From the NCBI RefSeq assembly GCF_902713615.1, contig NC_052172.1:21775954-21839953 (forward strand): 64,000 bases of DNA, given 5' to 3'. The position numbers and the translations under genes were made by a program. Shown here in pieces: positions 4,604-63,275 of this stretch; position 1 is the first letter of the stretch, and every line of letters starts with the position of its first letter. The notes under the pieces were generated by a model. It made no database searches and was not told where the DNA came from. It was given only the letters and a program-made list of their open reading frames with translations. This DNA comes from Scyliorhinus canicula. Taxonomy: Eukaryota.

Positions 4604-4694
4604 GTAAGAGATAATCAAATCGCAAAGTCAGGGTATTAAAGGCAGTTAAAAACGATTCAACTGCCAAAATTGACTCTATATACAATATTGAATT

Positions 4695-7485: not shown

Positions 7486-7489
7486 AGGA

Positions 7490-8960
7490 ATGTGATAGTG
7501 AGAAACAATATAGCCGGGGGGGAGATAGATACTGTTTAGTTGTGACAAGAAGTTCTGAACGTTATGCTGCCTGCCCAGTATCGGGGTTAGGACATCTCCC
7601 GTGGCTGGAAAGGGAGGAGATTGATACAATTGTCAGGGTTCATGTTGGCACACAACACAGGGAAGAACAGGCAAGAGGTGAGTACCAGGAACTAGGAGCT
7701 AAACTAAAGAACAGGAGCATTCAACCATTCTAAACTGGATTACCCTAGCTCTGAGTAAATTAGGATAGGGATAAGAAGATGAGTGAGGTGAATGGCTAAT
7801 GGAGCAGGGTATGAAAAGGAGGTTTCCATTTCATGGAATACCAGCAGCAGTAGGGGGGCAGGAAGGAACTGTACCAATTGGACGGACTCCACCTGAACCA
7901 GGCTCAGACTAGGTTCCTAATGGAACGGATAACCAGGATGGTCACAAGGACTTTAATCTAGTTAAGGACGTTGGAGAGGAATGGGGCTCAATGGTAGTAG
8001 ATAATAGCTGAAAAACAGAAGAAAGGCAAGACGTCAGAGTCCGAAATTGAGCTTTAGGCACCACAGATGTAAATAAAAATAGAGATAAGCAAAGTGTCAG
8101 TACAACATTAGAGAAGGACAAGAAGGGGGTGTGTGGCTCAAATAAGAGTTCTTTATCCAAGCCTACAGAGTGTAAGGAACAACAAAATTTAATCTGGCAT
8201 AAAGTGAACAGGAAAGATGGAAAATCGTGGGGAGGGAGGAGTGAGTAGTAATAGTGATTTAGAATGAAATCACTTCAATAATATGAGAGGATATAACGAG
8301 AGGTTAAGCAGACAGTGGAAACCTCATGGGAAGAATAATGAGATAGAAAAGAATAAGACAAGGGATATGTGTATACGGTCCCTGTAACAAGCGAGAAGTT
8401 GGAGGCTGTAGAAATACAAAGATTAGGTAAGCATGCAGCAAATGCAGAGTATTATAGGCACAAGCAGACTAGCACAGGTCGGAATGATAGTGAATTTGTT
8501 GATTTGTGTCTATGATAGTGTTATGTTTTTGGTCCTGGAACCTTTCAGGATCAAGTAGACGCGGAGGTGATTAACATCGCAACTGTTCTTTAGTGCTGTC
8601 GCAGTCGAGCTAATAAAACATGTATGCTGCGATCCCACAGTGCACTGGCTTGCAAAGTACAGCAAGCCAGTCAAAGCATACAGTAGAAAACAGAGAGATC
8701 CCAGCTTAGTGCCACTGACCTCTGGGTCTTCAAGCTCTACACCGGGCTGGGACTCCAGTGCTACATTGTTAGAGCTGCTGTCCCTTGAATGGAATGCTAG
8801 ACCTGGGGTGCTTGTAGAGGATACAAGAGGAAAGTTGCACAAACAGTTGATTTAACCTACTTCAGACAGAAAATGTGGTCGGGACTATTACCCACGGAGG
8901 CAGTGCAAATAAATAATGAGAGGCTATTAAGTGAGAATTGAAGAGATATTTGAGGGAATA
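7490..8960 (+). mobile_element. Old degenerate CR1 (ORF1 esterase and ORF2 endonuclease remnants)
   Basis: VRVHVGT and DGLHLN-like remnants (gacggactccacctgaac); many stops and frameshifts. Confidence 0.5.
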
Positions 8961-9162
8961 AGTGATTGAAATGTGTTTCTTTCCAGCACTGACTGGGTAG
9001 ACTCCAGTATCCTTTCACTGCATACATTCCTTGTATGTTTCTATATCAGAAGGACGTTCTGGTAACAGCAATAGTCAATTTAGTCATTGGTTGTAATATT
9101 TTATCAATAACTCTTGTGGGTAAAAATATTCAACTCTGCTTTTTCCCCCTCCCCCTCCTCAG

Positions 9163-9347
9163 TCGTTCATAGCCTCACAGGGTTTGAGCATTCCTTCCCA
9201 GACAAGTGTGAGCCGGGAAAAGCTCAAGAAGAAAATTGTACGGTCTAAGCCGAGCCCTTCTCCATCAGTTCACTGTCAGACGGGAGCCCAGGACAAGAAT
9301 GAGAAAAAATTTATCCTGGGGAATTTCCCTTGTAAAGAGTGCACAAA
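9163..9347 (+). CDS. ZNF541: ZNF541-like exon ending in the first half of a C2H2 finger (...GNFPCKECT)
   Basis: Strong polypyrimidine tract + cag|TCG; open frame for 185 nt; AA|gtaggt phase-2 donor matches the last exon. Confidence 0.8.
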
Positions 9348-9559
9348 GTAGGTAAAGCTATGAGTGGTGGGGTCTGGATAATACATGTTGCCAAGAGTTG
9401 TGATTTCCTGATTAACTGCTGTTAAGGTGCAGAATTAAGTAAATAACTTGCATTTATATTGGACCTTTCACCACCTCGGGACAACCCAAAGAACTTTACA
9501 GGAAGTGTTTTTGAAGTTCACTGTTGAAATATGGGGAAACTTTTAAAAACAATATGTTT

Positions 9560-10390
9560 AAGAATTTTTTCATTATCAAAACAACTAGAAACAATCAAAC
9601 AGAAAAACATAAAAGATAAGAGAAAAAAGGCAAAAACACATACAACATATAATAAACTTAATACAAAAACTAACTTTTAAAAATAAATTTAGAGTACCCA
9701 ATAATTTTTTCCAATTAAGGGGCAATTTGGCGTGGCCAATTCACCTACCTACCCTGCACATTTTTGGGTTGTGGGGACGAAACCCACGCAAACACGGGGA
9801 GAATGTGCAAACTCCACAATACAAAAACTAACCTAAACTCCCTAACACCTGATGGTGATGTAACTCTTTTAAAAAAAAAAAGAAATGAATGGCTGACATC
9901 TCGGGTAAAATATCTCCACTGACCCCCTAACGTTGAACTTGACCTTCTCCAAATGCAAAAATTACATTAGGTCACCCAGCCGAAGTGAGGCTCTAGGCGG
10001 AGTGGGAGGCCTCCACCCAAGCAAAATTCACCTTTGGGCTGTCAACGAGGCAAAGGCAAGGGCATCCACCTTGACCCCAGACTGAAGCACCAGTGATTCC
10101 AACCCCCCAAATATGGCCACCAGCAGACACGGATCCAAATCTACACTGAGTATCTCTGACATGGTGTTAAAGGAAGAAGCCCATAAACCTATCGACTTGG
10201 GACAGGACCAGAACATATGCGTGTGATTAGCCAGCCCACGATAGCGGTGCTCACAGTTATCCCCAGGGAAGAACCCGTTCATCCTTGCCCTGGTCAAGAG
10301 CGTCCTCGGCAAAACGTTAAACTGAACCAGAGGCACAAAAAGGACAGTACTGCAGCGGGAGCCACCTTGTGTACGTCTTCCCCCTACATT
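9560..10390 (-). mobile_element. L1/Tx1-type LINE 3' fragment (with SINE insert ~9675-9820)
   Basis: ORF 10028..10426: C...HTHMFWSCPK...W, an L1 C-terminal zinc-knuckle-like motif. Confidence 0.65.
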
Positions 10391-10626
10391 ACACCACTGG
10401 GAAACTTTCTCAAGGGCAATTAACAATGGGCAATAAATGCTGGCCTAGCCAGTGATACCCACTACCCATGAATGAATTTAACACTGGCAGCACGCAAATT
10501 GTGCACAGTAAGCTCCCACAACAGTAATGAGACAATAGTGAATTATCGCGGATGCTGGAATCTGAAACGAAAATAGAAAATGCTGGAAAATCTCAGTGGA
10601 TCTGACAGAATCTGTGGAGCGAGAAC

Positions 10627-10670
10627 AGAGTTAACGTTTCGAGTCTGGATGACTCTTCGTCAAAGCTGGA
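10627..10670 (-). ncRNA. Minimal type I hammerhead-like motif (Penelope pLTR), C3U variant or decayed
   Basis: Minus strand: TTGACGA-A-GAGTC-atcca-GACTC-GAAACGTT; perfect 5-bp stem II and palindromic AACGTT stem III. Confidence 0.55.
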
Positions 10671-10687
10671 GAGAACTGGAAATGGGC

Positions 10688-10885
10688 TGGGGTGCGGTGA
10701 GGCTGGATAGGGGGTGCGGTGAGGCTGGATAGGGGGTGCGGTGAGGCTGGATAGGGGGTGCGGTGAGGCTGGATGGGGGTGCGGTGAGGCTGGATGGGGG
10801 GTGCGGTGAGGCTGGATGGGGGTGCGGTGAGGCTGGATGGGGGGTGCGGTGAGGCTGGATGGGGGGTGCGGTGAGGCTGGATAGA
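10688..10885. repeat. ~20-22 bp minisatellite (ggggtgcggtgaggctggat)n
   Basis: About 9 near-identical tandem copies visible. Confidence 0.95.
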
Positions 10886-11203
10886 GGGCCAGAGATAGAT
10901 TGAGGCTGGGGAGAGATTGACAAAGATGTTGTGGACAAAAAGAAAAAGGGAATGTAAACGGTGGTGATTGTGGCACATTAACAGCACCCCCTATCCAGTG
11001 TTAATGGCACAACAAAGGTAAGCAGTGTGTCAAAGGACAACCTGGAACAGAGAACAGATGGCCCTGGTGGGGTGGGGCAAGCAGAGACAGTAGTAAGCGA
11101 AAAACAAGATGGAAAATAGGATGAAAAGGGGGATGGAAAATTGAATCAATGGAAGAAATTGGATCTCAAACAATGACGAGACAGAGTACAGAAATGAGAT
11201 ACA

Positions 11204-11430
11204 AGGGCAGCACGGTGGCCTAGTGGTTAGCACAACCGCCTCACGGCGCTGAGGTCCCAGGTTCGATCCCGGCTCTGGGTCACTGTCCGTGTGGAGTTTG
11301 CACATTCTCCCCGTGTCTGCGTGGGTTTCACCCCCACAACCCAAAAATGTGCAGAGTAGGTGGATTGGCCACGCTAAATTGCCCCTTAATTGGAAAAAAT
11401 AATTGGGTAATCTAAATTTTAAAAAAAAGA
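11204..11430 (+). mobile_element. Young HE1/V-SINE with 14-bp TSD
   Basis: Flanked by agaaatgagataca; near-identical to copies at ~18640-18882, 23925-24149 and 25735-25958. Confidence 0.9.
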
Positions 11431-11446
11431 AGAAATGAGATACAGA

Positions 11447-12205
11447 ATCTGGTGAACTGATGCGACAACAATAATCTCTCCCTCAATGTCAACAAAACGA
11501 AGGAGATTGTCATCGACTTTAGGAAGCGTAGTGGAGAACATGCCCCTGTCTACATCAATGGGAATGAAGTAGAAAGGGTCGAGAGCTTCAAGTTTTTAGG
11601 TGTCCAGATCACCAACAACCTGTCCTGGTCCCCCCCATGCCGACACTATAGTTACGAAAGCCCACCAACGACTCTCTCAGAAGACTAAGGAAATTTGGCA
11701 CGTCAGCTACGACTCTCACCAACTTTTACAGATGCACCATAGAAAGCATTCTTTCTGATTGTATCACAGCTTGGTATGGATCCTGCTCTGCCCAAGACCG
11801 CAGGAAACTACAAAAGGTCGTGAATGTAGCCCAATCCATCACGCAAACCAGCCTCCTATCCATTGACTCTGTCTACAATTCCTGCTGCCTTGGAAAGGCA
11901 GCCAGCATAATTAAGGACCCTACGCACCCCGGACTTGCTCTCTTCCACCTTTCATCAGGAAAAAGATACAAAAAGTCACTTACCAACCGACTCGAGAACA
12001 GCTTCTTCCCTGCTGCCATCAGACTTTTGAATGGACCTACCTCGTATTAAGTTGATCTTTTCTCTACACCCTAGCTATGACTGTAACATTATATTCTGCA
12101 GTCACTCCTTCCTTCCCCATGTACGGTATGCGTTGTCTGTATAGCAGGCAAGAAACAATACTTTTCACTCTATACTAATACATGTGACAATAATAAATCA
12201 AAAAA
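11447..12205 (+). mobile_element. Rex1/Babar-type LINE 3' fragment
   Basis: Encodes LSLNVNKTKEIVIDFRKRSGEHAPVYINGNEVERVESFKFLGVQITNNLSW...SFFPAAIRLLN; ends catgtgacaataataaatc. Confidence 0.75.
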
Positions 12206-13716
12206 TGAAAATAAAATGATAGAAATAAAAATGGGATGAAGGTGGATGAGAGAGTTCACAGCCTGAATTGTTGAACTCAATGTTAAGTCCAGAAGGCTGT
12301 AACGTATCTAATCAGACGGTATGGTGCTCTTCCTCTTGTTTGAGTTGGGCTTCACAGGAACATTGCAGCAGCCCAAGGGCAGACAGGAAAGCAGGACGGT
12401 GAATTGAAATGGCAGTGACAGAAAGGTTTGGGTCCTGCTTTTGTAGGGATTGATGGTGTTCTGCAAAGCGGTCACCCAGTCTGCATTTAGTCTCTCCAGT
12501 GTAGAGTAGACCATATTGGGAGCAGCAAATACAATAGACCAGACTGAAGGAGGTGCACGTGAAGTGTTGCTTCACCTGAGAGGAGTGTTTGGTGAGCAGG
12601 AAGGTAAAGGGGCAGGTGGTGCATCTTCTGCGATTGCATGGAAGGTGCCATGGGAAGAGGGTGATGGGGGAGTCAACTAGGATATCCCAGAGGGAACGGT
12701 CCCTGCGGAATACTGACAGGGAGTGAGGGGATGATGTGCTTAGATCATGCTGGAGTTGACTGAACTGGACAAGGATGATACTTTGAATGGGGAAGCTGGT
12801 GGGGTGAAAATTGAGGACGAGGGACCCAATTCTGCGAGGGGATGGGGAGAGCAGAGGGGCAGAAATGAGAGCCCTGTCAACTATAGTGGGTGGGACGATT
12901 AATGAAGAACGAAGATATCAGCACCATTTTGGAAAGTGGCATCATCACAACAGATATGGTGAAGGAACTGGGAGAACTCGATGGAACCCTTGCAGGATGT
13001 GGGGGTAATGAGATAACGTTTCTTTACCATGCTTTTCAGGTGAATTGCAGTTGTGTTTTGGGTTCTTTCCTTTACTTGCTGCTCAGGAAGGTTCTTTCTC
13101 CTCCCTCACTTCTGCATGTTCTGAGAATCTTGCAGTGCCACTTCCCACTTTCTCTTCATGTGGTGAAACTGCCCGAGTATGAAACGGTGGACAGCTTGGT
13201 CCAACAAACTTGTCCCAAGACAAAAATCAACCACAACTTGCACTTGGATAGCACCTTCAACGCATAACACATTCCAAGGCATTTTACAAGAGGAGAGTTA
13301 TTGGTCAGCAAGCAGTCGTGACAACTAATCCTGTCTGCCGATTTCCCTTCCACCACCAAGGGTAACACTTGATGAAAATCCGAGGTTAGCTAAAGGGAAG
13401 GAAAACATTTGGGTGTTCAGATACTAACATGGCCCTAAACTCACCATTTCCTACAGCGAGAGGACATGGCCTTGTTGTAAGGCACAAGGAGTTTTGGGTA
13501 TGGGACACCCACTCTGATAACCTCACCCTTTTGAAATAAAGGAAGAGATTTTTTGGGATGTGCATGCGATTAGTGTGGGAGATACATGGTGTGGGAAATT
13601 CTGAGTGTTCCTCTTAGCAGAGTGAATTGCAAAGAGTTAGTTGCACAACCATTAGGTTTCAGACAGTGAAGAAGAATTGGTGTCTGCTGCTTTCAGCCAT
13701 GATGAATCGTTTAAAG

Positions 13717-14102
13717 CAGGGGTGGGCAAACTGCGGCCCGCGGGCCGCATGCGGCCCGCCAAAGGTATTTCTGCGGCCCACCAAGTCATTAAAAAAAAAA
13801 AAAAAAAAAATTTTTCTAAAAAAAAAAAAATTTTTTTTTTTTTTAAAGGTTAATGGGTGGGGGGGCTGTTGGATTACTTACTGGCATAGGGTGGATACGT
13901 TGACTTGAGTAGGGTGATCATTGCTTGGCACAACGTCGAGGGCCGAAGGGCCTGTTCTGTGCTGTACTGTTCTATGTTCTATATGAGGCGCCCAGAATCA
14001 TAACCGGGTGAAGTAATTATTTTACTTAATATACTATGCGGCCCTTTGTGAATTGTGAATTTCTGAATGCGGCCCTTGCACGGAAAAGTTTGCCCACCCC
14101 TG
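13717..14102. mobile_element. Non-autonomous hAT (Charlie/Buster-like) MITE, 386 bp
   Basis: Perfect 16-bp TIRs caggggtgggcaaact / agtttgcccacccctg; 8-bp TSD gtttaaag on both sides (13709-13716, 14103-14110). Confidence 0.9.
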
Positions 14103-14176
14103 GTTTAAAGGCTTTTCTTTTCCCAGCTGGATAAGGGTGTAAACTGCCCTCCATGAAGGATCATTTAGAATCTTAC

Positions 14177-14460
14177 GGGTGACACAGTAGCACAGGGGCT
14201 GCACTGTTGCTTCACAGCGCCAGGGTCCTGGGTTTGATTCCCGCTTGGGTCACTGTCTGTGTGGATTCTGCACATTCTCCCCGTGTCTGAGTGGGTTTCC
14301 TCCGGGCGCTCTGGTTTCCTCCCTCAAGTCCCGAAAGACGTGCTTGTTAAATTCTCCCTCCGTGTACCTGAACAGGTGCCAGAATGTGGCGACTAGGGGC
14401 TTTCACAGTAACTTCATTGCAGTGTTAATGTAAGCCTACTTGTGACAATAATAGATTATT
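14177..14460 (+). mobile_element. V-SINE ('tgtgacaata' tail subfamily)
   Basis: Same head and tail as the 6281 copy. Confidence 0.8.
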
Positions 14461-14654
14461 AAATAGCAATTTGCAATGACAAGAACTCAACTGCAACTAC
14501 AGTGTCACATAGATAACAAAGCGAAGTTCCCTCCCCCTGCCCCTTCTGTAATCAGCAGAGCGTTGTTTGATTATTTTGCATGGCAAGTAACCAGATTGGT
14601 TTACAAACTAATAACCCATTGGAAAACAATCTTTATTATGCACGTGTATTTCAG

Positions 14655-14838
14655 AGTATTTGACAAAGTGAAAAGTCGAAACGCTCACATGAAATGCCAC
14701 AGGCAGCAGGAGGAGCAAGAAAGACAGGCAGAGATGAAGCGGTCGAGGATACGTTTGAAAGTTGAGCCAAAGGAGGAACCAGAGGAGACCATTCTAGTCT
14801 TCACGTCAAACAATTTGTCAAACATTACCACACCATAA
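14655..14838 (+). CDS. ZNF541: ZNF541-like terminal coding exon, (K)[19 protein letters not shown]...ITTP*
   Basis: ttcag|A completes the [23 protein letters not shown] C2H2 finger. VFDK and a single terminal finger with a short tail fit ZNF541 better than TRERF1 or MIDEAS. Confidence 0.8.
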
Positions 14839-17800
14839 AAGACTACCAGCATCTTGGGGCTAGCAGATGTAGAAAGAAGGTTTTGGGGAGAGAGCAGAGC
14901 AGTAGTCTTGAGTTTCAGATTGTACAAAGAGCTTGCACAGAAAGAGTCAACACCCTCCCCTCTACTGTAAATAACTGCTTCCAGGTATTTTGATTTGGTG
15001 CATCTGGAGGTGGGGAATGGGTGCACATTGCATATTGTAAGTCTAGACCACCAGACACACATAAAACACGAGTCTGCAGCAAATAAATGCACAGGTTTAT
15101 TTTTCAATTTCACATTGGACTGTTTTCAAGACGATGAAGACAGGTCCTAAACGAGGTACTTTGTGTCAGCCACAAGATTAACTAGTGGGGTAGAGAAACC
15201 CTGGTTCAATGATGATGTGTTAAACCTGTTAAACTCTTGCCATTGAGCTGCTAAGCTTGCAGTAATTTACAACCCATAATGACCTTAGTGTATAGATAAA
15301 GAAGCTCCCAAAAGGTAATAAATACCTGAACCATTGTATTTCAGTCACCTTTGAAGAATGTTCTATTGCTACCCCACTCACCAGCCAATGGACAGGTAGA
15401 AATTGGTGATGCCCTGGGTCTTAAAGTAAAATCACTGATTATCAGCAGAAAATTGGGACATGGAGCACAATGAAACAGACAAAATAATAGAGGTTAAAGG
15501 AAAGAAATCCCTTCTCCTAAAATAGAAAATACAGGGTAATGGAAAAGAGATGATTAGCCCGGGGAGGGGGTGGGGGAGCACAGGGGTTCCACGCCTCAAC
15601 AGGAGGTAACTTCAGGAACAGTTTATAAACAGGCAATGACGATCAATCACCACTTCCACGTTCTCATTGGAAATGAGACACAAATGGGGAGATGATTGTT
15701 GTGAGTGGATAAACCTGCTTGTCAACTGCTACCCCGTGCATTGTCTAATCTACAATGGGGTATAAAAAGTTTTAGAAGCTACCTTTGGTCACCACGAGCT
15801 CGGGTAGGTAGGGCAAGCAGATGATGTTTGGTCAGCTGCTATCAGTGTCTCTTGAAAATAGCTGGTTTGAGAGAGTAAACGGAGGTGAGTGAACTCCAAC
15901 TTTGTCAGTGAGCTCCTTCCCTCTACTGGGAGACATGGGCAAGATCTTTGCCTCCCAGGGAAATTTTTCTTTTTCTCTCCTTTAAATTTGAGGATAGGTT
16001 TCCTCGGTTTCTCTTACCTGCTCTCAGCCAGGGTGTGCGCACACTCAGGACACCCAGAAGATGGGCTTGGGGGAAATGACCTGCCCAATGTCACAAGGAG
16101 GTGCACACATTTGTTTCAGGAGCAAATCTCCCTGAGGACAGTGCATGGGTTTCATTTGGCGGATGCCTGCTCAGCAATTCCGGGGATGGAAGCTGTACCA
16201 CAGCACTTCTGAGACACGCAGTGTTCACACGCATGTACACTCCAGCAGGAGTGGCTAAATAATGAGCAGTCAAACTCCCGCTCGGGAGTGCTGAGGATAA
16301 CTAGCTTTCCAATAATCTCCCTGTCCTAAAAAATGCATTATATAGTTTTATCCTCTTTGCATTTTTAACATTGGTGATATTATCACTGTCTGTGGCAATG
16401 GAAAGATAATTGCTACAGTCGTTATTTTATGTACTATTTTAAAAGATGAAAAAATTTGCAGTACATTTTAGCGCTTTTAAACAGGAAGTAAAGCTGAGCC
16501 ATTAGGATATCGTGCCCTCTTAGCCCCAAGAATCTGGTCAACATGAGAGTCACTTCAGGCAAGAGTAGCTTTTTAAAAAGTTATTTTTAACAGAGGACAA
16601 TCACCGAGATGTCATTATGCCAAATCTCTGGACAGGATTTGCACGGGCAGACTTTATTTTATGGTGGCTGGACCTGAAAGGCATCAAACTTTGTACCCGA
16701 GCATTGGATACACACCCAGGAGTGGGAAAGACAACATTCAGCCAGCTGAAACCCAACCTGCCACGTTAATCATTTTCATTTGGGGACGATCAGAGCTGTG
16801 GGGCAGTGATCAAATTATAAACTGTGTTTCAGATCATATTATACCAAGAAATATTTGATCAGGAAATGGGGGTCAGAATTTCCTCATTAGTGGGAATTTA
16901 TTAATCCGTGGGAGAGGGGGCAAGTACTTTAGATTGAAAGTAATCCCCAACTATTTTAACTTGAGGCATCTCCTGCTAAATTTGTCCTGTTGTTTCCTCA
17001 CCCTGCCCATATAGTCCATAAACTACATAAAAAGTCTAAGTTTATAGATAACCACCCTCTTAAGAATTAAACTCCCAACTGTCCCAAAATCCATTCAAAT
17101 TAATTGCTGAAATAGTTTCAGAATTACACGCATCTGTCAACTCTGCAGGGGGATCAGTTAAATATTGGGAGTTACCCCTTTAGGATTTGGTAATATTGCA
17201 CATCTTGACAAGATGTGCTGTGCAGTTCCAGCAGAGTGGAGATCTGTCTGCCTCCTGTTAATTTACATCAGATTAATGCCCAGTTCTCAGTGGCTGAATG
17301 GGCAGCGTTCCAGATGAGAGATTGGGAATGCATTAAGCCCCAGAGCAACTATTTCTGCTGTCGGGGTTCCTTCTTTTGATTATAGTCACGGTTTATAAAA
17401 CGTGATCCACTCTACGAAATGCAAAATAAAATAAAAGAGTTGGGCGCCATAAAGTTTCAGAGCTTCAACTGTTTCTGTTTGACAAGTGAGAGAAGGAATG
17501 TGGCCTGATTCATTTCCTTCGCATTCACCAAAACGCGAGATAATTTTTATAAAAGCCCAAACTAAAGACTTTGTTGTTTCAAATGCTTTCATAATCTGGA
17601 AGATCTAAAATGGAACAGCTTTTGCTTTACACGAGTTTTATCTCTTAATTTTCTATTGTACATTGCTGTATATTTTCCTTAAGATACCAACCCATGGGCA
17701 GTTCACAGATTACTAGAAAATTGCATTAGGAATGGATGTATTTTTACTTTTTTTTGCTGATAAGTGCAGTGTTTTCTTTTGTGTATATAAGAGAATTTTT

Positions 17801-37865: not shown

Positions 37866-38381
37866 GTATAAGTGAGGGGAACATTGGAATTTTGCTAGGA
37901 CACAGACAGGGGGTGCAGGGCTTTGACACTGGGCTGTGTGGGGCGCACGCACCTCCTAATGACTGGGTAAAGAGGTAGCATAGACACGATGGGCCGAATG
38001 GGCTGCTCCTGTGCTGTGTCTGCTGGTTGGTTCCTGGTCTTTCTGCTTGTCCAGGGTGCAACTTCTGGGGTGGAGAATGGAGAACACAGACCTCAGTTCA
38101 GCTGAAGAGGCCATTCAGCCCATAGAGCCTGTTCCATCCTTCTGTGGGATCATGGTCACTCAGTGACCTAACTCTATATGTCCACTTTTGCCCCATTTCT
38201 CTTCATACCGTTAGATACTGGAGATCCATCAATCTCAGACTTAAATTTAACTAATGATGTAGGATCAACGGCCATTTGTGGAAGAGTTTCATGCTTTTAC
38301 CGCTCCTTTGTATGTAGAAGTGTTCCTCATTTCACTCAAAATTTCAACCCCTATTCGTAGACTCGTCAAATGTGGGGAGAA

Positions 38382-44245: not shown

Positions 44246-44310
44246 TGGGGATTGTACGTGGACAGGGTCACATCTCCTAATGTCACCTTCCAAAGGGAAG
44301 AAGAACTTAC

Positions 44311-44604
44311 AGGACTGTCTATCCCAATAAGTTGTGTGATTTTTGGAGTCCTGTCCTTGATGGTCAGAATGGCGGGGGTCCGCTCAACCCTGCTGTCTCC
44401 CTGCACCTTGTTGTGGTCAGTCAGCTCCTCTGTGAAGTGGATGCGGTGATTCCTCTCCAGGTGCAGCCGCAGCACAGTGCCACTGCCAGACGTGACCAGC
44501 TCTTTGCTGCAGATGTTGCACACGATGGTCTTATCATCCCTCCGAGTTACATATTTCCAGAGCTCACTGGCCCGGGGCATCCCCGAGCCTCCGTGACTCC
44601 GCAT
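44311..44604 (-). CDS. ZBED-like gene, first coding exon with BED finger 1
   Basis: Acceptor ttgcag at 44622; in-frame ATGs at 44604 and 44580; SELWKYV...VCNICSKEL...[12 protein letters not shown]; donor CCT|gtaagt. Confidence 0.85.
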
Positions 44605-44689
44605 CAGCTCCGGCCGGCCTGACTGCAATACAACAGGGAGATGGGTCACATCAGGTCCTCTCCAGCCTGCCACTCCCTCACCCTCCCCC

Positions 44690-47600
44690 ACCCACCATGC
44701 CTCCCCCAGCCCTCACACACCCTCCCTCCCTCCCCCACTCACCACCCCTCCATCCCTCACACCCCCCCCATCCTTCACACCCCCATCCCTCACACCCCCC
44801 ATCCCTCACAACCCCCCTCCATCCTTCACACCCCCCTCCATCCTTCACATCCCCCCAACCCTCACAACCCCTCCATCCCTCACACCCCCATCCCTCACAC
44901 CCCCCATCCCTCACAACCCCCCCCATCCTTCACATCCCCCCAACCCTCACATCCCCCTCCATCCCTCACAACCCCCCCTCCATCCTCAGACACCCCTCCA
45001 TCCCGCACACCCCCCTCCATCCTTCACATCCCCCTCCATCCCTCGCACCCCCCCAACCCTCACATCCCCCTCCATCCCTCGCATCCCCCCCATCCCTCAC
45101 ACCCCCCCATCCCTCACACCCCCCCATCCCTCACACCCCCCTATCCCTCACACCCCCCATCCCTCACAACCCCCTCTCCATCCTTCACATCCCCCCCAAC
45201 CCTCACACCCCCCCCTCCATCCCTCACCCCTCTCCATCCCTCACCCCTCTCCATCCCTCACCCCTCTCCATCCCTCAGACACCCCCCTCCATCCCTCACC
45301 CCCCTCCATCCCTCGCACGCCCCCTCCATCCCTCGCACGCCCCCTCCATCCCTCGCACCCCCCTCCATCCCTCGCACCCCCTCCATCCCTCACCCCCCTC
45401 CCTCCATCCCTCACCCCCCTCCATCCCACACCCCCCCTCCATCCCTCACACCCCCCGCTCCATCCCACCCCCCTCCATCCCTTACAGCCCCGCTCCATCC
45501 CTCACACCCTCCCCATCCCTCACACCCCCCTCCATCCCTCACAACCCCTTCCATCCCTCACACCACCCCCCCATCCCTCACACCACCCCCCCATCCCTCA
45601 CCCCTACATACCTCACCCCTCCATCCCTCATACCCCCCCATTCCCTCACACCCCCCCCCCATCCCATCCCTCACACCCCCACCCCCCACTCACTCTCTTC
45701 TCCCTCACTCACCCCCCTCCATCCCTCACACCCCCCCTCCATCCCTCACACCCCACCTCCATCCCTCACACCCCACCTCCATCCCTCACACCCCACCTCC
45801 ATCCCTCACACACCGCCCTCCATCCCTCACACCCCCCATCCCTCACACCCCCTCATTCCCTCACACCCCCTCATTCCCTCACACCCCCTCATTCCCTCAC
45901 ACCCCCCATCCCTCACACCCCCACCCCCCATCCCTCCAACCCCCCCATTCCCTCACACGCCCCCATCCCTCACACCCCCACCCCCAATCACTCACACCCC
46001 CACATCACTCACACCCCCACCCCCATCACTCACACCCCCATCCCTCACACCCCCACTCACTCTCTTCTCCTTCCCTCCATCCCACACCCCCCCTCCATCC
46101 CACCCCCTTCCATCCCACACCCCCCTCCATCCCACACCCCCCTCCATCCCACACCCCCCCTCAATCCCACACGCCCCCCCTCCATCCCCCCCCCCCCTCC
46201 ATCCCACCCCCTTTCCATCCCACACCCCCCTCCATCCCACACCCCCCCTCCATACCAACCCCCCATCCCGCACCCCCCCTCCATCCAACACCCCCCCTCC
46301 ATCCCACACACACCCCCTCCATCCCACCCCCGCTCCATCACACCCCCAGCTCCATCCCTCACTCACTCTCCCCTCCATCCCTCACTCACCCTCCCCTCCA
46401 TCCCTCACTCACCCCCCCCTCCATCCCTCACCCCCCCCCCTCACCCCTTCCATCCCTCCCCCCCTTCATCCCTCACCCCCCCTCCATCCGTCACTCCCCC
46501 CCCTCCATCCGTCACTCCCCCCTCCTCCATCCCTCACCCCCCCTCCCTCACCCCCCCTTCATCCCTCACCCCCCCTCCATCCGTCACTCCCCCCCCTCCA
46601 TCCGTCACTCCCCCCCCTCCATCCGTCACTCCCCCCCTCCATCCCTCTCACCCCCCCGTCCCTCTCACCCCCCTCCATCTTTCACCCCACTCCATCCCTC
46701 ACCCCACTCCATCCCTCACACCCCCCTCCATCCCTCACCCCCCCTCCATCCCTCATCCCTCACCCCCCCCATCCCTCACCCCCCCCCCCCTCCCCCTCAC
46801 ACACCCCCTCCATCCCTCACACCCCCCTCCATCCCCACCCCCCCCTCCATCCCTCACCCCCCCTCCATCCCCCCCCCTCCATCCATCCTTCACCCCCCTC
46901 CATCCCTCACACACCCCTCCATCCCGCACACCTCCCTCCATCCCTCACACCCCCCTCCCACCCCTCACACCCCCCTCCACCCCTCACACCCCCCTCCATT
47001 CCTCACACCCCCCCCTCCATCCCTCACACCCCTCCCCGCTCCATCCCTCACACCCCCCCTCTCCATCCCTCACACCCTCCCCCTCTCCATCCCTCACACC
47101 CTCCCCCTCTCCATCCCTCACACCCCCCCGTCTCCATCCCTCACACCCCCCCTCTCATCCCTCACACCCCCCCCCCCCTCTCCATCCCTCACACCCCCCC
47201 CTCTCCATCCCTCACACCCCCCCTCTCCATCCCTCACACCCCCCCTCTCCATCCCTCACACCCCCCCCCTCTCCGTCCCTCACACCCCCCCTCTCCATCC
47301 CGCCACCCCCCCCCTCCATCCCTCACCCCCCCCCCTCCCATCCCTCACCCCCCCCCCTCTCCATCCCTCACCCCTCTCCATCCCTCACCCCTCTCCATCC
47401 CTCACCCCTCTCCATCCCTCACCCCTCTCCATCCCTCACCCCTCTCCATCCCTCACCCCTCTCCATCCCTCACACCCCCTCACCCCCCCTCTCCATCCCT
47501 CACACAGGGAAACCCCCCTCTTCCATCCCTCACACCCCCCTTCACTCCATCCCGTCACACCCCCCCCTCTCCTCCATCACACCCACTCATCCATCCCTCA

Positions 47601-49170
47601 CAACCTCACAACCCCCCCTCTCCCATCCCTCACCCCCACCCCTCTCCATCCCTCACCCCTCTCCATCCCTCACCCCTCTCCATCCCTCACCCCTCTCCAT
47701 CCCTCACCCCCCCTCTCCATCCCTCACCCCCCCCCCTCCTCCGTCCCTCACTCCCCCCCCCTCCGTCCCTCACCCCCCCCCCTCTCCGTCCCTCACACCC
47801 CCCCTCCATCCCTCACACCACCAACCCCAATCCCCCCCTCAACACCCACCACCCCCATCCCTCACACCACCACCCCCCCATCCCTCACACCACCACCACC
47901 CCCATCCCTCACACCACACCCCCCCTCACACACACACCCCCCCTCTCCGTCCCTCACACCCCCCCTCTCCGTCCCTCACACCACCCCCCCATCCCTCACA
48001 CCACCACCCCCATCCCTCACACACACCCCCCCCTCACACACACACCCCCCCTCTCCATCCCTCACACCCCCCCCCTCCCCACACCCCCCCCTCCATCCCT
48101 CACACCCCCCTCCATCCCTCACACCCCCCCTCCATCCCTCACCCCCCCCTCCATCCCTCACACCCCCCCCCCTCCCTCACACCCCCCCCCTCCATCCCCC
48201 ACCCCCCCCTCCATCCCTCACACCCCCCCCCCATCCCTCACACTCTCCCCCCCCCATCCCTCACACCCCCCCCTCCATCCCTCACACACCCCCCTCCATC
48301 CCTCCACCCCCCCCTCCATCCCTCACACCCCCCCCTCCATCCTCACACCCCCCCCTCCGCCCTCCACCCCCCCCTCCATCCCTCACACCCCCCCCTCCAT
48401 CCCTCACACCCCCCCCATCCCTCACACCTCTCCATCCCTCACCCCCCCCTCCATCCCTCACACCCCCCCCTCCATCCCTCCACACACCCCCCCCTCCATC
48501 CCTCACACCCCCCCTCCATCCCTCACACCCCCTCTCCATCCCTCACACCCCCCCTCCATCCCTCACACCCCCCCTCCATCCCTCACACCCCCCCCCCCAC
48601 CCCCACACCCCCCCCTCCATCCCTCACCCCCCCCCCCCTCCATCCCTCACACCCCCCCCTCCATCCCTCACACCCCCCCCCCTCCATCCCTCACACACCC
48701 CCCCCTCCATCCCTCACACCCCCCCCTCCATCCCTCACACCCCCCCCCCCCCTCCATCCCTCACACCCCCCCCTCCATCCCTCCACACCCCCCCCTCCCA
48801 TCCCTCACACCCCCCCCCTCCATCCCTCACACCCCCCCTCCATCCCTCACACCCCCCCCTCCATCCCTCACACCCCCCTCCATCCCTCACCCCCCCTCCA
48901 TCCCTCACACCCCCCCTCCATCCCTCACCCCTCTCCATCCCTCACCCCCCTCCATCCCTCACACCCCCCCTCCATCCCTCACACCCCCCCCTCCATCCCT
49001 CACACCCCCCTCCATCCCTCACACCCCCCCCTCCATCCCTCACACCCCCCCCTCCATCCCTCACACCCCCCCTCCATCCCTCACACCCCCCCCCCATCCC
49101 TCACCCCTCTCTCCATCCCTCACACCCCCCCCCATCCCTCACCCCTCTCTCCATCCCTCACACCACACCC
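44690..49170. repeat. ~4.5-kb C-rich satellite, (ccatccctcacacccc)n variants, in ZBED intron 1
   Basis: Plus strand almost free of G; hundreds of degenerate units. Confidence 0.97.
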
Positions 49171-49189
49171 CCCGCATCCTGTCACTCAC

Positions 49190-49386
49190 TCTCTTCTTCC
49201 CTCCAGCCTCCCTCAGTCACTATCTCTCGGTTGTCACGGAAACGCGGCTCGAGGTTCCCGGAAGCGGCTCCGCAGCAACAGGAAGTGACGCAGATTTGGG
49301 GCCTGTCTGTATCTAAGCCCCGCCCCCGGTCTCCACGGAAACGCGGCCTGGTTCCGCTCGGAGCCTCACTCCAGCCCGGCCCGCGG
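49190..49386. promoter_or_regulatory. Bidirectional CpG-rich promoter and non-coding first exons of ZBED-like (-) and MRPS12 (+)
   Basis: Minus-strand donor |gtgagt below 49190, plus-strand donor G|gtgagt after 49386; ETS CCGGAAG 49258 and CAGGAAGTG 49279, TGACGCA 49286, GC box 49317-49327, cacggaaacgcggc twice (49235, 49334). Confidence 0.75.
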
Positions 49387-49429
49387 GTGAGTTTCCCCCG
49401 GATCCGGCCCCGTACCTCCGGGAATTATC

Positions 49430-49850
49430 CTCAGTACCTCTGGGGTTGGGTCTGGGTGGTCAGTTAGGCTCAGTACCTCTGGGGTCTGGGAGGTCAGTTA
49501 GGCTCAGTACCTCTGGGGTCTGGGAGGTCAGTTAGCCTCAGTACCCCTGGGGTTGGGTCTGGGTGGTCAGTTAGCCTCAGTACCCCTGGGGTCTGGGAGG
49601 TCAGTTAGCCTCAGTACCTCTGGGAGGTCTGTTAGCCTCAGTACCTCTGGGAGGTCAGATAGCCTCTGTACCCCTGGGGTTCGGTCTGGGTGGTCAGTTA
49701 GCCTCAGTACCCCTGGGGTTGGGTCTGGGAGGTCAGTTAGCCTCAGTACCCCTGGGGTCTGGGAGGTCAGTTAGCCTCAGTACCCCTGGGGTTGGGTCTG
49801 GGAGGTCAGTTAGCCTCAGTACCCCTGGGGTTGGGTCTGGGTGGTCAGTT
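49430..49850. repeat. 33/39-bp minisatellite (ctcagtaccYctggggt[tgggt]ctgggaggtcagttagc)n
   Basis: About 12 copies in MRPS12 intron 1. Confidence 0.9.
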
Positions 49851-49989
49851 GCTGGACCCAATGCCAATAGTTCACCAATGACTCTGGCTGCACAGAATTG
49901 GGCATGATGCCCCATCCAGTCAAGTATCATATTCGCCCTCTTTGTCCTGCTTGATCACCCTGATTGGGGCATTTGCTTGATTGGGAGGG

Positions 49990-50885
49990 GGTTAAACTCT
50001 GTCTGGGTGGGGTAAACACTGGGGTGGGGTAAACACTGGGGTGGGGTAAACACTGGGGTGGGGTAAACACTGGGGTGGGGTAAACTCTGTCTGGGTGGGG
50101 TAAACTCTGTCTGGGTGGGGTAAACACTGTCTGGGTGGGGTAAACACTGGGGTGGGGTAAACACTGGGGTGGGGTAAATACTATCTGGGGTGGGGTAAAT
50201 ACTATCTGGGGTGGGGTAAATACTATCTGGGGTGGGGTAAATACTATCTGGGGGGGGGTAAATACTGTCGGGGGGTACATACTGTCGGGGGGGGGTAAAT
50301 ACTGTCGGGGGGGTAAATACTGTCGGGGGGGGGGGTAAATACTGTCGGGGGGGTAAATACTGTCGGGGGGGTAAATACTGTCGGGGGGTAAATACTGTCG
50401 GGGGGGTAAATACTGTCGGGGGGGGTAAATACTGTCGGGGGGGGGTAAATACTGTCGGGGGGGTAAATACTGTCGGGGGGGTAAATACTGTCGGGGGGGT
50501 AAATACTGTCGGGGGGGTAAATACTGTCGGGGGGGTAAATACTGTCGGGGGGGGTAAATACTGTCGGGGGGGTAAATACTGTCGGGGGGGGGGGTAAATA
50601 CTGTCGGGGGGGTAAATACTGTCGGGGGGGTGTAAATACTGTCGGGGGGGTTTAAGTACTGTCGGGGGGGTGTAAATACTGTCGGGGGGTGTAAATACTG
50701 TCGGGGGTGTAAATACTGTCGGGGGGTGTAAATACTGTCGGGGGGGGGTAAATACTGTCGGGGGGGGGGTAAATACTGTCGGGGGGGGGGTAAATACTGT
50801 CGGGGGGGGTGTAAATACTGTCTGGGGGGGTAAATACTGTCTGGGGGGGGGGTAAATACTGTCGGGGGGGGGGGTAAATACTGAC
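49990..50885. repeat. G-rich 17-22 bp satellite (gggggtaaaYactgtc)n
   Basis: About 45 copies with an ordered shift from GTAAAC to GTAAAT variants. Confidence 0.95.
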
Positions 50886-50962
50886 TGGCAACCATGGAAC
50901 CTGCATCCAACAGCTCGGGGAGGAAGGAATTGATTTTAGACTTCCATCAAGAAAAACCCCTC

Positions 50963-51188
50963 TGGGCAGCACGGTGGCACAGTGGTTAGCATTGCTGCCT
51001 ACGGCGCTGAGGACCCGGGTTCGAATCCTGGCCCTGGGTCACTGTCCGTGTGGAGTTTGCACGTTCTCCCCGTGTCTGCGTGGGTTTCACCCCCACAACC
51101 CAAAGATGTGCAGGTTAGGTGGATTGGCCACGCTGAATTGCCCCTTAATTGGAAAAAAATAATTGGATATGCTAAATTAAAAAAAAAC
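50963..51188 (+). mobile_element. HE1/V-SINE with TSD
   Basis: Flanked by gaaaaacccctct. Confidence 0.85.
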
Positions 51189-51240
51189 GAAAAACCCCTC
51201 TAACTCCTACAAAAAGGGGGGCTGTAAATACCGAGGCGCT

Positions 51241-51810
51241 GGGTGGGATTTTCCGGTTGCCGACGTTGAAATCGCGTTCGGCGAAATCGGGGACAGTGCC
51301 GGTTTTTAGATGCTCCGCCCCCTCCAAAACAGTATAATCGCTGAGTAGGCCGCATGCTGCTGGGACGGCCTCAGGATATCCTCTGAGGCCCTCCCCCCGA
51401 AGCTCCGCCCCCGACGGCCCGACTTCCGAAGGCGAGTCGAGTGTACTCTCATTTTCCGGGGACTTGGCGTGGTGGCTGCGGACCGTGTCCAATGCCGCCA
51501 GTCGGGTGCAGGGAGTGCAATTCCGCTGGCGAGGGGAGGGGGGGTCTTCAGCAGGGGCTGGGGGTGGCGAAGGGGGCTTCAAGCGACACTATCTGGCAGG
51601 CCGGGTCCGTGCCCAGCCGTCGCCGTGCGCATGCGCGGCCATGGACCTGGCCATTCTGCATCCGTATCTGCAGGTAAAGACGGGGGCTTCACGTGGTGCG
51701 GCTGCTAGCCCCCCACCGGGTGGAGCATCGGTGTGAGGGCGGCACGACGTTTTGGTCAGAAGACCAGATGCTTCCTCCGGACATAGCTGCAAAATCGGAG
51801 AATCCAGCCC
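51241..51810. mobile_element. GC-rich TIR element (possibly PIF/Harbinger-type MITE)
   Basis: Imperfect TIRs gggtgggattttccg / cggagaatccagccc; similar termini at ~2879 and ~34838; TSD not clear. Confidence 0.55.
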
Positions 51811-52499
51811 ACTATTTCTGGGCTTGGCATTCTGGTGAAACTGATTTCCCGAGTTTCTCGTGTCCACATCAGATGAAAGCTTTCCCAAATGCAAGGTTAA
51901 TCTGGAAAATCAGTTAAAATTGTTACCAGACTCATTATTCACTCTCTCCATCACCGACACACAGGAGCAGCCGTGTGTACCATCCACAAGATGCAGGAAC
52001 TCACCAAGGTTTCTTAGACAGCACTTTCCAAACCCACGATCACTACCATCTAGAAGGACAAGAGCAGCAGATATCTGGGAACCCCACCACCTGGAGGTTC
52101 CCCTCCAAGTCACTCACCATCCTGACTTGGAAATAGGTCTCTGTTCCTTCACTGTCGCTGGGTCAAAATCCTGGAGTCCCTCCCTAACAGCACAGTGGGT
52201 GTACCTACATCTCAAGGACTGCAGCGGTTTAAGACGGCTCACCACCACCTTCTCAAGGGGCAACTAGGGATGGGCAATAAATGTTGGCCTCACCAGCAAA
52301 GCTTGTATCAGTGTGATAACATTCGAGGCTATGGGCCAAGTGCTGCAAAGTGGGATTAGTATAGCTTTGTTGGTGCAGACTGGATGGGCCAAAGGGCCTC
52401 TTCTGTACTGCATGACTCTCTGGACAGGGTAAGTTATTGAACCTGTTTCCATTGCCATCTCAAGCTGAGCGTTCCAAATCATAACTTGCAGCATAAAAA

Positions 52500-52700
52500 T
52501 AGTAATAATCTTTATTATTGTCACAAGTAGGCTTACATTAACAGTGCAATGAAGTTACTGTGAAAATCCCCTAGTCGCCACACTCCGGCGCCTGTTCGGG
52601 TACACTGAGGGAGAATTCAGAATGTCCAAATTACCTAACAGCACGTCTTTCAGGACTTGTGGGAGGAAACCGGAGCACCCGGAGGAAACCCACGCAGACA
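52500..52700 (-). mobile_element. V-SINE ('tgtgacaata' tail), 5'-truncated
   Basis: Reverse complement of the 6281 family. Confidence 0.8.
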
Positions 52701-52921
52701 ATATCCACTTCATCTCTCCCTCTGGTTCTTTGCACTCTGGTTACAGACACCCCTCCTGACGGAAGGTTCCCCTTCTTTACTTTTCAACATCTCCATCAAA
52801 GCTCCCCTTAATATTCTCTAAGGAGATAATCCTGGCTTCTCTAATCTTATCGCACTGGTTTGTTTTCGTTGTGTAGGACTGAAAACTACTCTGTTCCCGT
52901 GGTGGGGTCAAGGCTGAAGAG

Positions 52922-52970
52922 ATGTTCTCCACAGGTGCGATGAGGACCTGGATGTCATCGTTGAGTTTGG
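52922..52970 (+). CDS. MRPS12: MRPS12 first coding exon, MFSTGAMRTWMSSLSL(A), start of mitochondrial presequence
   Basis: Exon acceptor gtgtag| at 52877; gagATG; 49 coding nt then G|gtgaga; phase 1 matches the next acceptor. Confidence 0.7.
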
Positions 52971-53914: not shown

Positions 53915-54351
53915 CAGCCGCAAGACTGCTCAACTCCTCCCCAGCTTCCCATCTTCAGCGGGTTTTCCCACCCAGAGTCACGCTGCCTCCTCCCGTTTCC
54001 CAGCAGAACAGCCGGACCATGGCCACCCTCCACCAGATGCACAAGATGGGCAAACCCAAGCGCGCCCCACCCAAGGTAGGCGCCACCTTCGGCCGGCCCC
54101 AGCTGAAAGGTGTGGTGCTGAAGACCATGATCCGCAAACCAAAGAAGCCCAACTCGGCCAACCGCAAGTGCGCCCGCGTGCGGCTCAGCAACGGCAAGGA
54201 AGCGATCGTCTTCATCCCCGGAGAGGGCCACAATCTCCAGGAACACAACATCGTGCTGGTGGAGGGGGGGCGAACACAGGACCTCCCGGGCGTCAAGTTA
54301 AAAGTCGTTCGGGGGAAGTACGACTGCGCTCACGTCCAAAAGAAAAAGTAA
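53915..54351 (+). CDS. MRPS12: Mitochondrial ribosomal protein S12 (uS12m), main exon
   Basis: MATLHQMH...[35 protein letters not shown]...[11 protein letters not shown]...[11 protein letters not shown]...[12 protein letters not shown]; acceptor ctccag|. Confidence 0.95.
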
Positions 54352-60888: not shown

Positions 60889-62199
60889 TCACCTGGTATC
60901 GAGTCGACGCACTCGCACCTTTTGCTTGTAATGATATTCCTTCAGGTATTCCTTCAGGGTGTTGGGAATCGGGAGGAGGTCAATCCCATCGTAGGTGGAG
61001 CAGCTGGAAATGGCAGCCCTGCAGATGTGCTGGAGACTGAACGGGAAGGTCCTGTTGATGGGGCTGGAGAGGAGTGGTTCGAAGAACATGCAGGAGTTGG
61101 GATCCTTGTAGTGCTCCAGCAGGCCGGTGACAGTGGGGGCGTGGAAGACGCTGGGGTCGTGGACATCAAAGCTGAAATTGTGGTTCCACTGCTCAATGCG
61201 TGCATGCAGGGAGCGGCTGTACCTGCGGAAGCTGACCGAGAAGAGGTAGTCCTCCTGGGCAGAGTCCCGCAGCAGGAAGGCTCCCTCTGGTTTACCCTCC
61301 AGCAGAGCCTCAGCCTGGTACCGATCCATCACCCCCCAGTAGCAAGGAAAAGTGGTCAACTCCAGGAGGTCGGGAACCAGGCAGTGGATGTAGTCGATCT
61401 GCGTGTGGGCGCGATAGCCATCTTTGATTTCCACCTGCTCTGGGGCCAGTTGGGGAGGGGGCACCTCCTCGACGGGCACACTCTCCTGTACCTGGAGCAT
61501 AGCCCGGTCATCTCCAGCCAGCTCATTCATTCCTGGCGCCAGTTTGGGCCCCAGTTTGTACAAGGGGTTAATCTGTGCTGTCACCTCAAAGGTGTGAATC
61601 TGTGCGTGGGGCGGGGGCTCGACCCCCTGCTCAATGCTGATCCGCCTTCTCTCTCTCAGACGGTCATCTTCATCCTCCACTGGCGTCCCACCAGAGGGTG
61701 CGGTATCCAGCATCGGTGGGCTCTGTGAGACGGGGGCCGTGTGCTGCTTGATCAGGTACCATTTCTGTGCTAAATCTGTGCCTTCAGGAAAGGGGCATTT
61801 ATCAAGCATCAGTTCGCTAATGTGGATCTTCCTTTTGGAGGAGGATAAGATGGCAGAATGTAGGCTGTGGGATTTAATGGGAAAACACTGGCCCACAACA
61901 TCCTGTATCCGCTGCCTCAGGGATCTGCTGTGCAGTTTGCATGCTCCAAAGTCACGGGAATCCTTCTCCCGGGTCAGATCCAGATTCTGTTTCCCCGATC
62001 TCCCGCCCGAAGGATTCTCGACATTCCCCTCCTTTTGTTCTATTCCCGAGGTGCCGGCGGAGGCCTCGGATTTGTGGGAATTTCTGTTCTTCCTTTTGCT
62101 CCGACCTTCCGCCTGATCTTCTGGGTCCCCCCGTCTGACCTTTGGCCTCACAGCCCGCTTATCCTTCTCCGGCCTCTGGTTTTCTTGTGGATCCGACAT
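60889..62199 (-). CDS. SOCS9: Suppressor of cytokine signalling, SOCS4/5 subfamily (SOCS9/SOCS5-like), 436 aa, single coding exon
   Basis: [62 protein letters not shown]2 (CYWGVMDRY...FLLRDS) and SOCS box (FSLQHICR...[10 protein letters not shown]). The family call is secure; the paralog name is from recall of the N-terminus (RPKVR). Exon acceptor ttttgcag| at 62433. Confidence 0.85.
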
Positions 62200-62934: not shown

Positions 62935-63275
62935 AGGTCGGCAAGGTGGCACAGTGGTTAGCACTGTTGCCTCACAGCGACAGGGCCCCAGGTTCAATTC
63001 CTGGCCTCGGGTCACTGTCTGTTTGGAGTTTGCACTTCCTCCTCTTGTCTGTGTGGGTTTTCTCCGGGTGCTCCGGTTTCCTCCCACAGTCCAAAGATGT
63101 GCAGAGTAGGTGAATTGGCCACGCCAAATTGCCCCTTAAGTGTCGAAAAGATTAGGTTACTGGGTTACGGGCACAGGGTGGAGGTGTGGGCTTGGGTAGG
63201 GTGCTCTTTCCAAGGGCCGGTGCAGACTCGATGGGCCGAATGGCCTCCTTCCGCACTGTAAATTCTATGATTCTA
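62935..63275 (+). mobile_element. HE1 SINE with HER1 tail
   Basis: tRNA head, V-domain, gggccgaatggcctccttccgcactgtaaattctat tail. Confidence 0.85.

Follow-up and report, generated by a model that had tools for sequence, protein, structure and literature searches.

The 260-bp CpG island at positions 49165–49424 of the window, the whole 64-kb stretch of S. canicula DNA analysed, very probably (probability roughly 0.88) acts as one compact TATA-less, CCAAT-less bidirectional promoter giving rise to the spliced first exons of both MRPS12 and a ZBED gene. In layout the island is typical of TATA-less bidirectional CpG-island promoters. The two genes lie on opposite strands and are transcribed apart, as given by the GT–AG orientation of their introns and the strands of their coding sequences. 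Both splice junctions are found in RNA, which places both first exons in a 197-bp interval with divergent transcription from one small CpG island. The features of the locus are as follows.

44308–44622, minus strand: ZBED exon 2, the first coding exon, with the ATG at 44604 and the first BED zinc finger; the start of the annotated 810-aa CDS matches
44623–49189, minus strand: ZBED intron 1 (GTGAGT...TTGCAG), 4.6 kb, almost wholly minisatellite
49190–49342, minus strand: ZBED exon 1, non-coding; 3' end exact; donor ACTCAC at 49184–49189 (GTGAGT on the minus strand)
49165–49424, no strand: CpG island, with both first exons and all promoter motifs inside
49314–49386, plus strand: MRPS12 exon 1, non-coding; 3' end exact; donor GTGAGT at 49387–49392
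49387–52876, plus strand: MRPS12 intron 1 (GTGAGT...TGTGTAG), with arrays inside; junction from RNA contigs
52877–52970, plus strand: MRPS12 exon 2, with the ATG at 52922 and the start of the mitochondrial presequence; donor GTGAGA at 52971
53915–54351, plus strand: MRPS12 exon 3, coding part and stop codon; 100% identity to P0001

Contigs from the catshark runs X1, X2 and X5, which come from three studies, together with the raw-read run X20, were mapped on 49090–49490. The RNA label of these runs is a guess, and they are taken as RNA because their contigs are spliced. In X1, X2 and X5 one contig ends its island portion exactly at 49190 and continues with 30 letters unique in the window, at 44593–44622 in the ZBED coding exon, while a second contig leaves the island at 49386/7 and goes on with 30 letters, also unique in the window, at 52878–52907 in MRPS12 exon 2. 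Since these tails are unique to the two acceptor exons, the junctions 49190 to 44622 and 49386 to 52877, both of which the sequence-only reading had predicted, are real and are each present in contigs of three independent runs. Both introns are canonical GT–AG introns on the expected strands, with GTGAGT donors and pyrimidine–AG acceptors, and the divergent donors lie 197 bp apart, as had been read from the sequence. The ZBED-side contigs measure 1433 and 2829 nt and carry the island piece at their terminus, as expected of the 5' end of a ZBED mRNA; the MRPS12-side contigs, of 366–686 nt, are spliced in the three studies. Stable, processed transcripts are thus made both ways. In the mapping on 49090–49490 no RNA depth was present left of 49188, and run X20 contributed 0 reads on the island and bears on neither strand nor start sites.

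The contigs also delimit the 5' ends. ZBED exon 1 extends to 49256 in X5, to 49292 in X2 and to 49342 in X1, the last in a single contig that could contain k-mers of rare upstream MRPS12 starts. The contigs of MRPS12 exon 1 begin at 49314 (X5), 49326 (X1, right after an Illumina adapter) and 49357 (X2). Both first exons fall within 49190–49386, so that the two starts are less than 1 kb apart, the positions given being contig ends and not exact starts. From these exon extents the 5' ends of ZBED and MRPS12 abut or overlap by up to ~30 nt, and no spacer is left between them. The GT–AG splice orientation suggests the strand of each transcript, and the contig ends suggest approximate starts. On the plus strand, transcription would start at about 49314–49326 or slightly upstream and give a non-coding exon of 60–75 nt that is joined from 49386 to 52877. 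On the minus strand, it would start at about 49292–49342 and give a non-coding exon of 100–150 nt, joined from 49190 to 44622 across the 4.6-kb intron, the product being the presumed mRNA of a BED-finger, hAT-derived ZBED1-like protein with its ATG at 44604. No upstream ATG was seen when ZBED exon 1 was read by eye. At 49293 and 49309, within ZBED exon 1 and the promoter, the X1 contig has A where the window has G, and these differences are probably allelic variants.

It is very unlikely that the island exon is a minor or alternative ZBED 5' end, a spliced upstream antisense output of the MRPS12 promoter, with the main ZBED promoter elsewhere, for example near 44650: the MRPS12-side contigs are 5–14 times deeper than the ZBED-side contigs (contig depth being a poor measure of expression), the RNA mapping covered 49090–49490, so that a second ZBED start at 44622–44700, just ahead of the coding exon, may exist, and the coding-exon acceptor is just 18 nt ahead of the ATG, but the ZBED contig runs unbroken through the 49190–44622 junction in all three studies where a comparably abundant alternative 5' end would be expected to branch the assembly graph at 44622, the DNA upstream of 44622 is a CpG-poor array, and the sevengill shark Heptranchias repeats the layout, with a ZBED 5'-UTR acceptor just before the ATG, a G-rich array upstream and a CpG island beyond the array (in the skate, the matching acceptor was read by eye only).

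The bidirectional reading is further supported by the composition of the interval. The island has a GC content of 0.65 and a CpG observed/expected ratio of 0.91, against 0.38 for the whole 64-kb window. It is thus GC-rich, above the ratio of about 0.6 and set in a CpG-depleted genome, as a CpG island should be, although its 260 bp fall below some formal length cut-offs. It is the sole unique DNA between the C-rich minisatellite at 44706–49164 and the G-rich arrays at 49425–49850 and 49982–50871. Neither CCAAT, ATTGG nor TATA occurs in 49100–49450. The motifs located in the island are listed below.

49258, plus strand: ETS/GABP-type site CCGGAAGC, from the motif scan
49279, plus strand: ETS/GABP-type site CAGGAAGT, from the motif scan, running into a TGACG half-CRE at 49286
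49318, plus strand: GC box CCCCGCCCC, from the motif scan
49340–49351, plus strand: conserved block AACGCGGCCTGG, overlapping the second copy of a 14-bp repeat (49334–49347)

The ETS/GABP, CRE-like and GC-box motifs, the 14-bp repeat and the lack of a CCAAT box had all been described from the sequence, and each description was borne out. The ETS sites and the GC box (49258–49326) fall inside ZBED exon 1, 0–65 nt upstream of the MRPS12 contig starts. MRPS12 exon 1 in turn contains the conserved block AACGCGGCCTRG at 49340, positioned at the farthest ZBED 5' end or slightly upstream of it. All these elements are thus first-exon sequence and are presumed to act in both directions, and binding of the corresponding factors to shared elements may drive both genes and produce a real co-regulation of ZBED and MRPS12. 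Co-expression of the two genes had been expected in the sequence-only reading; the presence of both transcripts in three of three runs (X1, X2 and X5) is consistent with this expectation.

The 12-base block is invariant as AACGCGGCCTRG in the islands of the catshark, the sevengill shark and the skate Amblyraja, and in the three-way alignment a single block, AACGCGGCCT(A/G)G, is invariant and has conserved flanks. Allowing up to two substitutions, the block has no match in the MRPS12 upstream regions of chimaera, frog, gar and turtle or in that of the frog ZBED gene, and blastn of the island against the chimaera, gar, turtle and frog loci returned CT-rich low-complexity matches only. The 14-mer direct repeat CACGGAAACGCGGC has exactly two copies in the 64 kb, at 49235–49248 and 49334–49347, with no further matches at up to two mismatches; 0.13 are expected by chance, and two were reached in 1 of 100 shuffles. 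In the skate and the sevengill shark no conserved block corresponds to the first copy, at 49235. Conservation is limited to the second copy, so that the functional unit is probably something other than the repeat itself. E2F, NRF1, hDRE (ZBED1) and Kaiso/BANP-type motifs were considered for the conserved block and none fits. The Heptranchias island repeats the order of ETS site, GC-rich box and conserved block. By consensus search, two candidate ETS sites are predicted in the catshark island, one in that of Heptranchias and, by the same pattern, none in that of Amblyraja; CCAAT occurs once in the Heptranchias island and is absent from the Amblyraja island. The skate island also contains, at 8783–8832 of its locus, a perfect (GGTGAC)x8 microsatellite ~130 nt away from the conserved block, which amounts to eight TGACG half-CRE motifs in tandem.

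The translation of MRPS12 exon 3 is 100% identical to the S. canicula protein '28S ribosomal protein S12, mitochondrial isoform X1' (P0001), and Pfam Ribosom_S12_S23 is found in MRPS12 with an E-value of 3.2e-26. The MRPS12 CDS covers 1430 bases in the genome record, and the CDS of an 810-residue protein on the opposite strand starts 8.3 kb upstream of that of MRPS12. The end of exon 2 had been placed at 52934 from the sequence and is here corrected to 52970, the annotated 161-aa protein using the donor at 52971. This later donor is needed because P0001 (161 aa) reads MFSTGAMRTWMSSLSLAAAR..., and its use yields MFSTGAMRTWMSSLSL..., which is conserved in other sharks. The minus-strand gene carries Pfam zf-BED (E-value 1.7e-09) and Dimer_Tnp_hAT, the hAT dimerisation domain. 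With a BED finger, this dimerisation domain and a syntenic host gene in four species, it is a member of the ZBED family. Orthologues are present in at least 10 elasmobranchs, and the chimaera has a ZBED4-like gene (P0131). Identity to the catshark protein is 78–90% in sharks, ~50% in stingrays, 33–40% in skates and 41–48% in frog and chimaera. The 78–90% identity among sharks indicates that the gene is under constraint, and the 33–40% identity of the skate orthologues (P0121, P0122) indicates that the skate lineage of ZBED evolves unusually fast. The ZBED loci tabulated previously have a synteny other than ELM2/zinc-finger and NAPA or MRPS12 (PMC3606216). Having no synteny match to those loci, the gene is a separate paralogue, labelled ZBED1-like or zbed4l2 by different sources.

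The island is bracketed by tandem arrays that occupy much of the two 5'-UTR introns.

44706–49164: minisatellite of a 20-bp unit, ~228 copies, 4.4 kb, C-rich on the plus strand and G-rich on the ZBED sense strand
49425–49850: array of a 34-bp unit, G-rich on the MRPS12 sense strand
49982–50871: array of an 18-bp unit, G-rich on the MRPS12 sense strand

The GC skew of the plus strand is accordingly about -0.95 to -1.0 left of the island and up to +0.6 right of it. The same bracketing arrays, G-rich on the sense strand of each gene, are present in Heptranchias (7868–8245 and 8691–9907 of its locus), where the ZBED intron holds a 1.2-kb GGGA-type array and the core GCCTCAGTRCCCCTGGGG is common to the array of the MRPS12 intron and the 34-bp unit of the catshark. 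In the skate, looser G-rich and C-rich stretches are found at corresponding places (7740–8340 and 9071–9370 of its locus). These G-rich minisatellites on the sense strands flanking the island are candidates for R-loop or G-quadruplex effects.

The order of genes in the window, obtained by tblastx against the loci of other species and from the genome record, is ELM2/zinc-finger (plus strand, to 14838), ERH (~24.1–26.6 kb), ZBED (minus), MRPS12 (plus) and SOCS (minus, 60889–62199). The last is a SOCS-family gene with SH2 domain and SOCS box, of 436 aa in the annotation; the ELM2/zinc-finger gene is represented in the window (1–14838, plus strand) by its 3' part, and the chimaera locus has the same two flanking genes. 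SARS2 had been reported as missing from the window, and this stands: no hit was obtained when the frog SARS2 region was compared by tblastx, and the turtle region matched a low-complexity array alone. A short repeat family in the window (37704–37869, 62935–63137, ~6280–6440 and 14195–14326) shows a 55–65% translated match to frog and gar introns and is probably a deeply conserved SINE core; some of its copies have ORF translations ending ...WVTVCVEFA.SP.VCVGF. The neighbours of MRPS12 and ZBED in other vertebrates are as follows.

Cetorhinus (basking shark): ZBED (minus) and MRPS12 (plus), head-to-head
Amblyraja (skate): ZBED (minus) and MRPS12 (plus), head-to-head, 2.3 kb between CDS starts
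Heptranchias (sevengill shark): MRPS12 (minus) and ZBED (plus), head-to-head, then ERH
Callorhinchus (chimaera): ELM2/zinc-finger (plus), MRPS12 (plus), SOCS (minus); no ZBED called
Mixophyes (frog), MRPS12 locus: SARS2 (minus) and MRPS12 (plus), then FBXO (minus), as in mammals
Mixophyes (frog), ZBED locus: NAPA (minus), ZBED1-like (plus; P0132), ELM2/zinc-finger (minus)
Atractosteus (gar): MRPL11-like (minus), MRPS12 (plus), prefoldin (plus)
Caretta (turtle): FBXO (plus), MRPS12 (plus), SARS2 (plus)

The head-to-head ZBED/MRPS12 pair is thus found in four elasmobranch orders (catshark, Cetorhinus, Amblyraja and Heptranchias), and in Rhincodon, Heterodontus, Hypanus and Rhinoraja both proteins are encoded on contigs of equal size. 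In Amblyraja and Heptranchias a CpG island that carries the invariant 12-mer lies between the two genes; both islands are likewise GC-rich, with a CpG observed/expected ratio above about 0.6. Read from these genome sequences, the ZBED–MRPS12 pairing is as old as the crown elasmobranchs. In the caecilian no neighbour was found within 10 kb. In the gar (Atractosteus spatula, 1–15926 of the locus analysed) the MRPL11-like mitoribosomal gene is head-to-head with MRPS12 with 3.9 kb between the CDS starts; a single island for this gar pair was considered and rejected, two CpG islands ~2.7 kb apart being present. In the turtle (Caretta caretta, 2289–24964 of its locus) MRPS12 alone looks inverted relative to frog and mammals, SARS2 lying downstream and the F-box gene upstream of it, both on the same strand.

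The frog places both genes on one chromosome, 1.16 Mb apart, in the order MRPS12 (minus) / SARS2 (plus) ... NAPA (minus) / ZBED (plus) in its own coordinates. The frog ELM2/zinc-finger gene is collinear with the exons of the window and tail-to-tail with ZBED. This orthologue in conserved synteny dates the ZBED gene before the split of cartilaginous and bony vertebrates. A frog ZBED gene sharing the island of NAPA was rejected, the two having separate CpG islands ~2 kb apart. It follows from the frog order that MRPS12 and ZBED keep their divergent orientation and are parted by one block bounded by SARS2 and NAPA, an order that fits either the loss or relocation of the block in cartilaginous fishes or its insertion in bony vertebrates. 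The sequence-only reading had offered two origins, a transposase domesticated by capturing the antisense output of a housekeeping promoter or an older ZBED–MRPS12 pairing. This choice is narrowed and not settled: the pairing is elasmobranch-wide, and the ZBED gene is older than the pairing demonstrably is. Moreover, as the frog ZBED gene lies beside NAPA with its own CpG island, domestication by capture of this particular promoter holds only if the ZBED–MRPS12 pairing is ancestral.

A derived pairing is favoured over an ancestral one and carries about even odds. ZBED would already have been a host gene elsewhere when a rearrangement on the cartilaginous-fish or elasmobranch stem placed it next to the MRPS12 promoter and it took that promoter over. 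Such a history agrees with the surroundings of the frog ZBED1-like gene (P0132), which lies tail-to-tail with the ELM2/zinc-finger gene, has NAPA as its upstream neighbour and is served by its own CpG island, ~2 kb from that of NAPA. It also agrees with the head-to-head position of SARS2 and MRPS12 in the frog, as in mammals (PMC1802594), with the chimaera, where no ZBED lies between the ELM2/zinc-finger gene and MRPS12, and with the absence of the conserved 12-mer upstream of MRPS12 in the non-elasmobranchs compared (chimaera, frog, gar and turtle). However, the gar displays a third arrangement, with the MRPL11-like gene upstream of MRPS12, and in the chimaera MRPS12 already has the ELM2/zinc-finger and SOCS genes of sharks as its neighbours, so that it is equally simple to suppose that the chimaera lost ERH and ZBED.

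A ZBED–MRPS12 pairing ancestral to jawed vertebrates, possibly the site at which the transposase was domesticated on the antisense output, and later split in bony vertebrates, is rather unlikely. Removal of the 1.16-Mb block from the frog order would recreate the shark arrangement, and the pair is stable in all elasmobranch orders sampled; against this, the ancestral pairing depends on one frog genome, ZBED is missing at the chimaera MRPS12 site and tblastn found no ZBED remnant in the chimaera MRPS12 locus. Its fullest form is more doubtful still: the ancestral pair would be the first domestication site of the hAT transposase on the antisense output, and the SARS2–NAPA block would later have split the promoter, SARS2 inheriting the MRPS12 half. 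The frog order MRPS12 (minus) / SARS2 (plus) ... NAPA (minus) / ZBED (plus) is a prediction of such a split, and if it were true, the textbook 'functional' pairing of MRPS12 with SARS2 would have arisen secondarily, by the chance of a breakpoint falling within a promoter.

Whichever origin applies, the bidirectional catshark promoter can be set beside known systems. Mammalian Mrps12 and Sarsm are transcribed in opposite directions from a promoter region of less than 200 bp that depends on CCAAT/NF-Y (Zanotto, Shah and Jacobs 2007, PMC1802594), with four NF-Y CCAAT boxes in the mouse (PMC1802594); the sequence-only reading had thus correctly described the mammalian head-to-head arrangement of MRPS12 and SARS2 on a CCAAT/NF-Y-driven promoter. 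Mammalian MRPS12 has an NRF-2/GABP (ETS) site at its start cluster and a non-coding first exon (PMC1802594). The mammalian and shark promoters share a GC-rich, TATA-less CpG island, divergent transcription from less than 200 bp and a non-coding MRPS12 exon 1 followed by a 5'-UTR intron; ETS sites would be a further common element, at the MRPS12 start cluster in mammals and, as predicted from the motif, 0–65 nt upstream of the contig starts in the shark. In contrast, the shark partner is a ZBED1-like domesticated transposase and not the functionally related SARS2, the shark island lacks CCAAT, minisatellites fill the two long 5'-UTR introns, and the first exons abut or overlap. Thus, neither the SARS2 partner nor the CCAAT array that mark the mammalian type of promoter is found in the catshark. 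The partner of MRPS12 varies by lineage, being SARS2 in frog and mammals, an MRPL11-like gene nearby in gar and ZBED in elasmobranchs.

Head-to-head pairs with starts less than 1 kb apart account for ~10% of mammalian genes (PMC1802594). The shark island resembles generic bidirectional CpG-island promoters in its divergent, stable, spliced mRNAs, the lack of a TATA box, the ETS/GABP and Sp1-type motifs and the switch in GC skew, and differs from them in its very small size (260 bp) and an essentially zero spacer. Other ZBED genes also live in host contexts, ZBED6 in intron 1 of ZC3H11A, ZBED1 at DHRSX and ZBED4 by ALG12 (Hayward et al. 2013, PMC3606216; Markljung et al. 2009, PMC2780926). Similarly to these, the shark gene, a domesticated hAT transposase carrying BED fingers and a dimerisation domain, is expressed via the promoter region of a host gene; unlike them, it relies on the antisense side of a housekeeping promoter via a new non-coding exon. 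Among the papers searched, none mentions ZBED together with MRPS12. The promoter of the shark locus is of an ordinary type; what is unusual is the partner.

The mammalian MRPS12–SARS2 pair serves as a paradigm of a bidirectional promoter coupling two functionally related mitochondrial-translation genes. Throughout shark and ray history MRPS12 has instead been paired with a domesticated transposase, without a CCAAT/NF-Y array. A ZBED partner and the lack of an NF-Y array show that neither the identity of the partner nor the core architecture is fixed by MRPS12 function. The AACGCGGCCTRG element has stayed unchanged for about as long as crown-group elasmobranchs have existed. For new genes, one proposed route to expression is the antisense side of a CpG-island promoter, and the locus provides a clean, RNA-supported case of a transposase-derived gene expressed via a new non-coding exon from that side of such a promoter.
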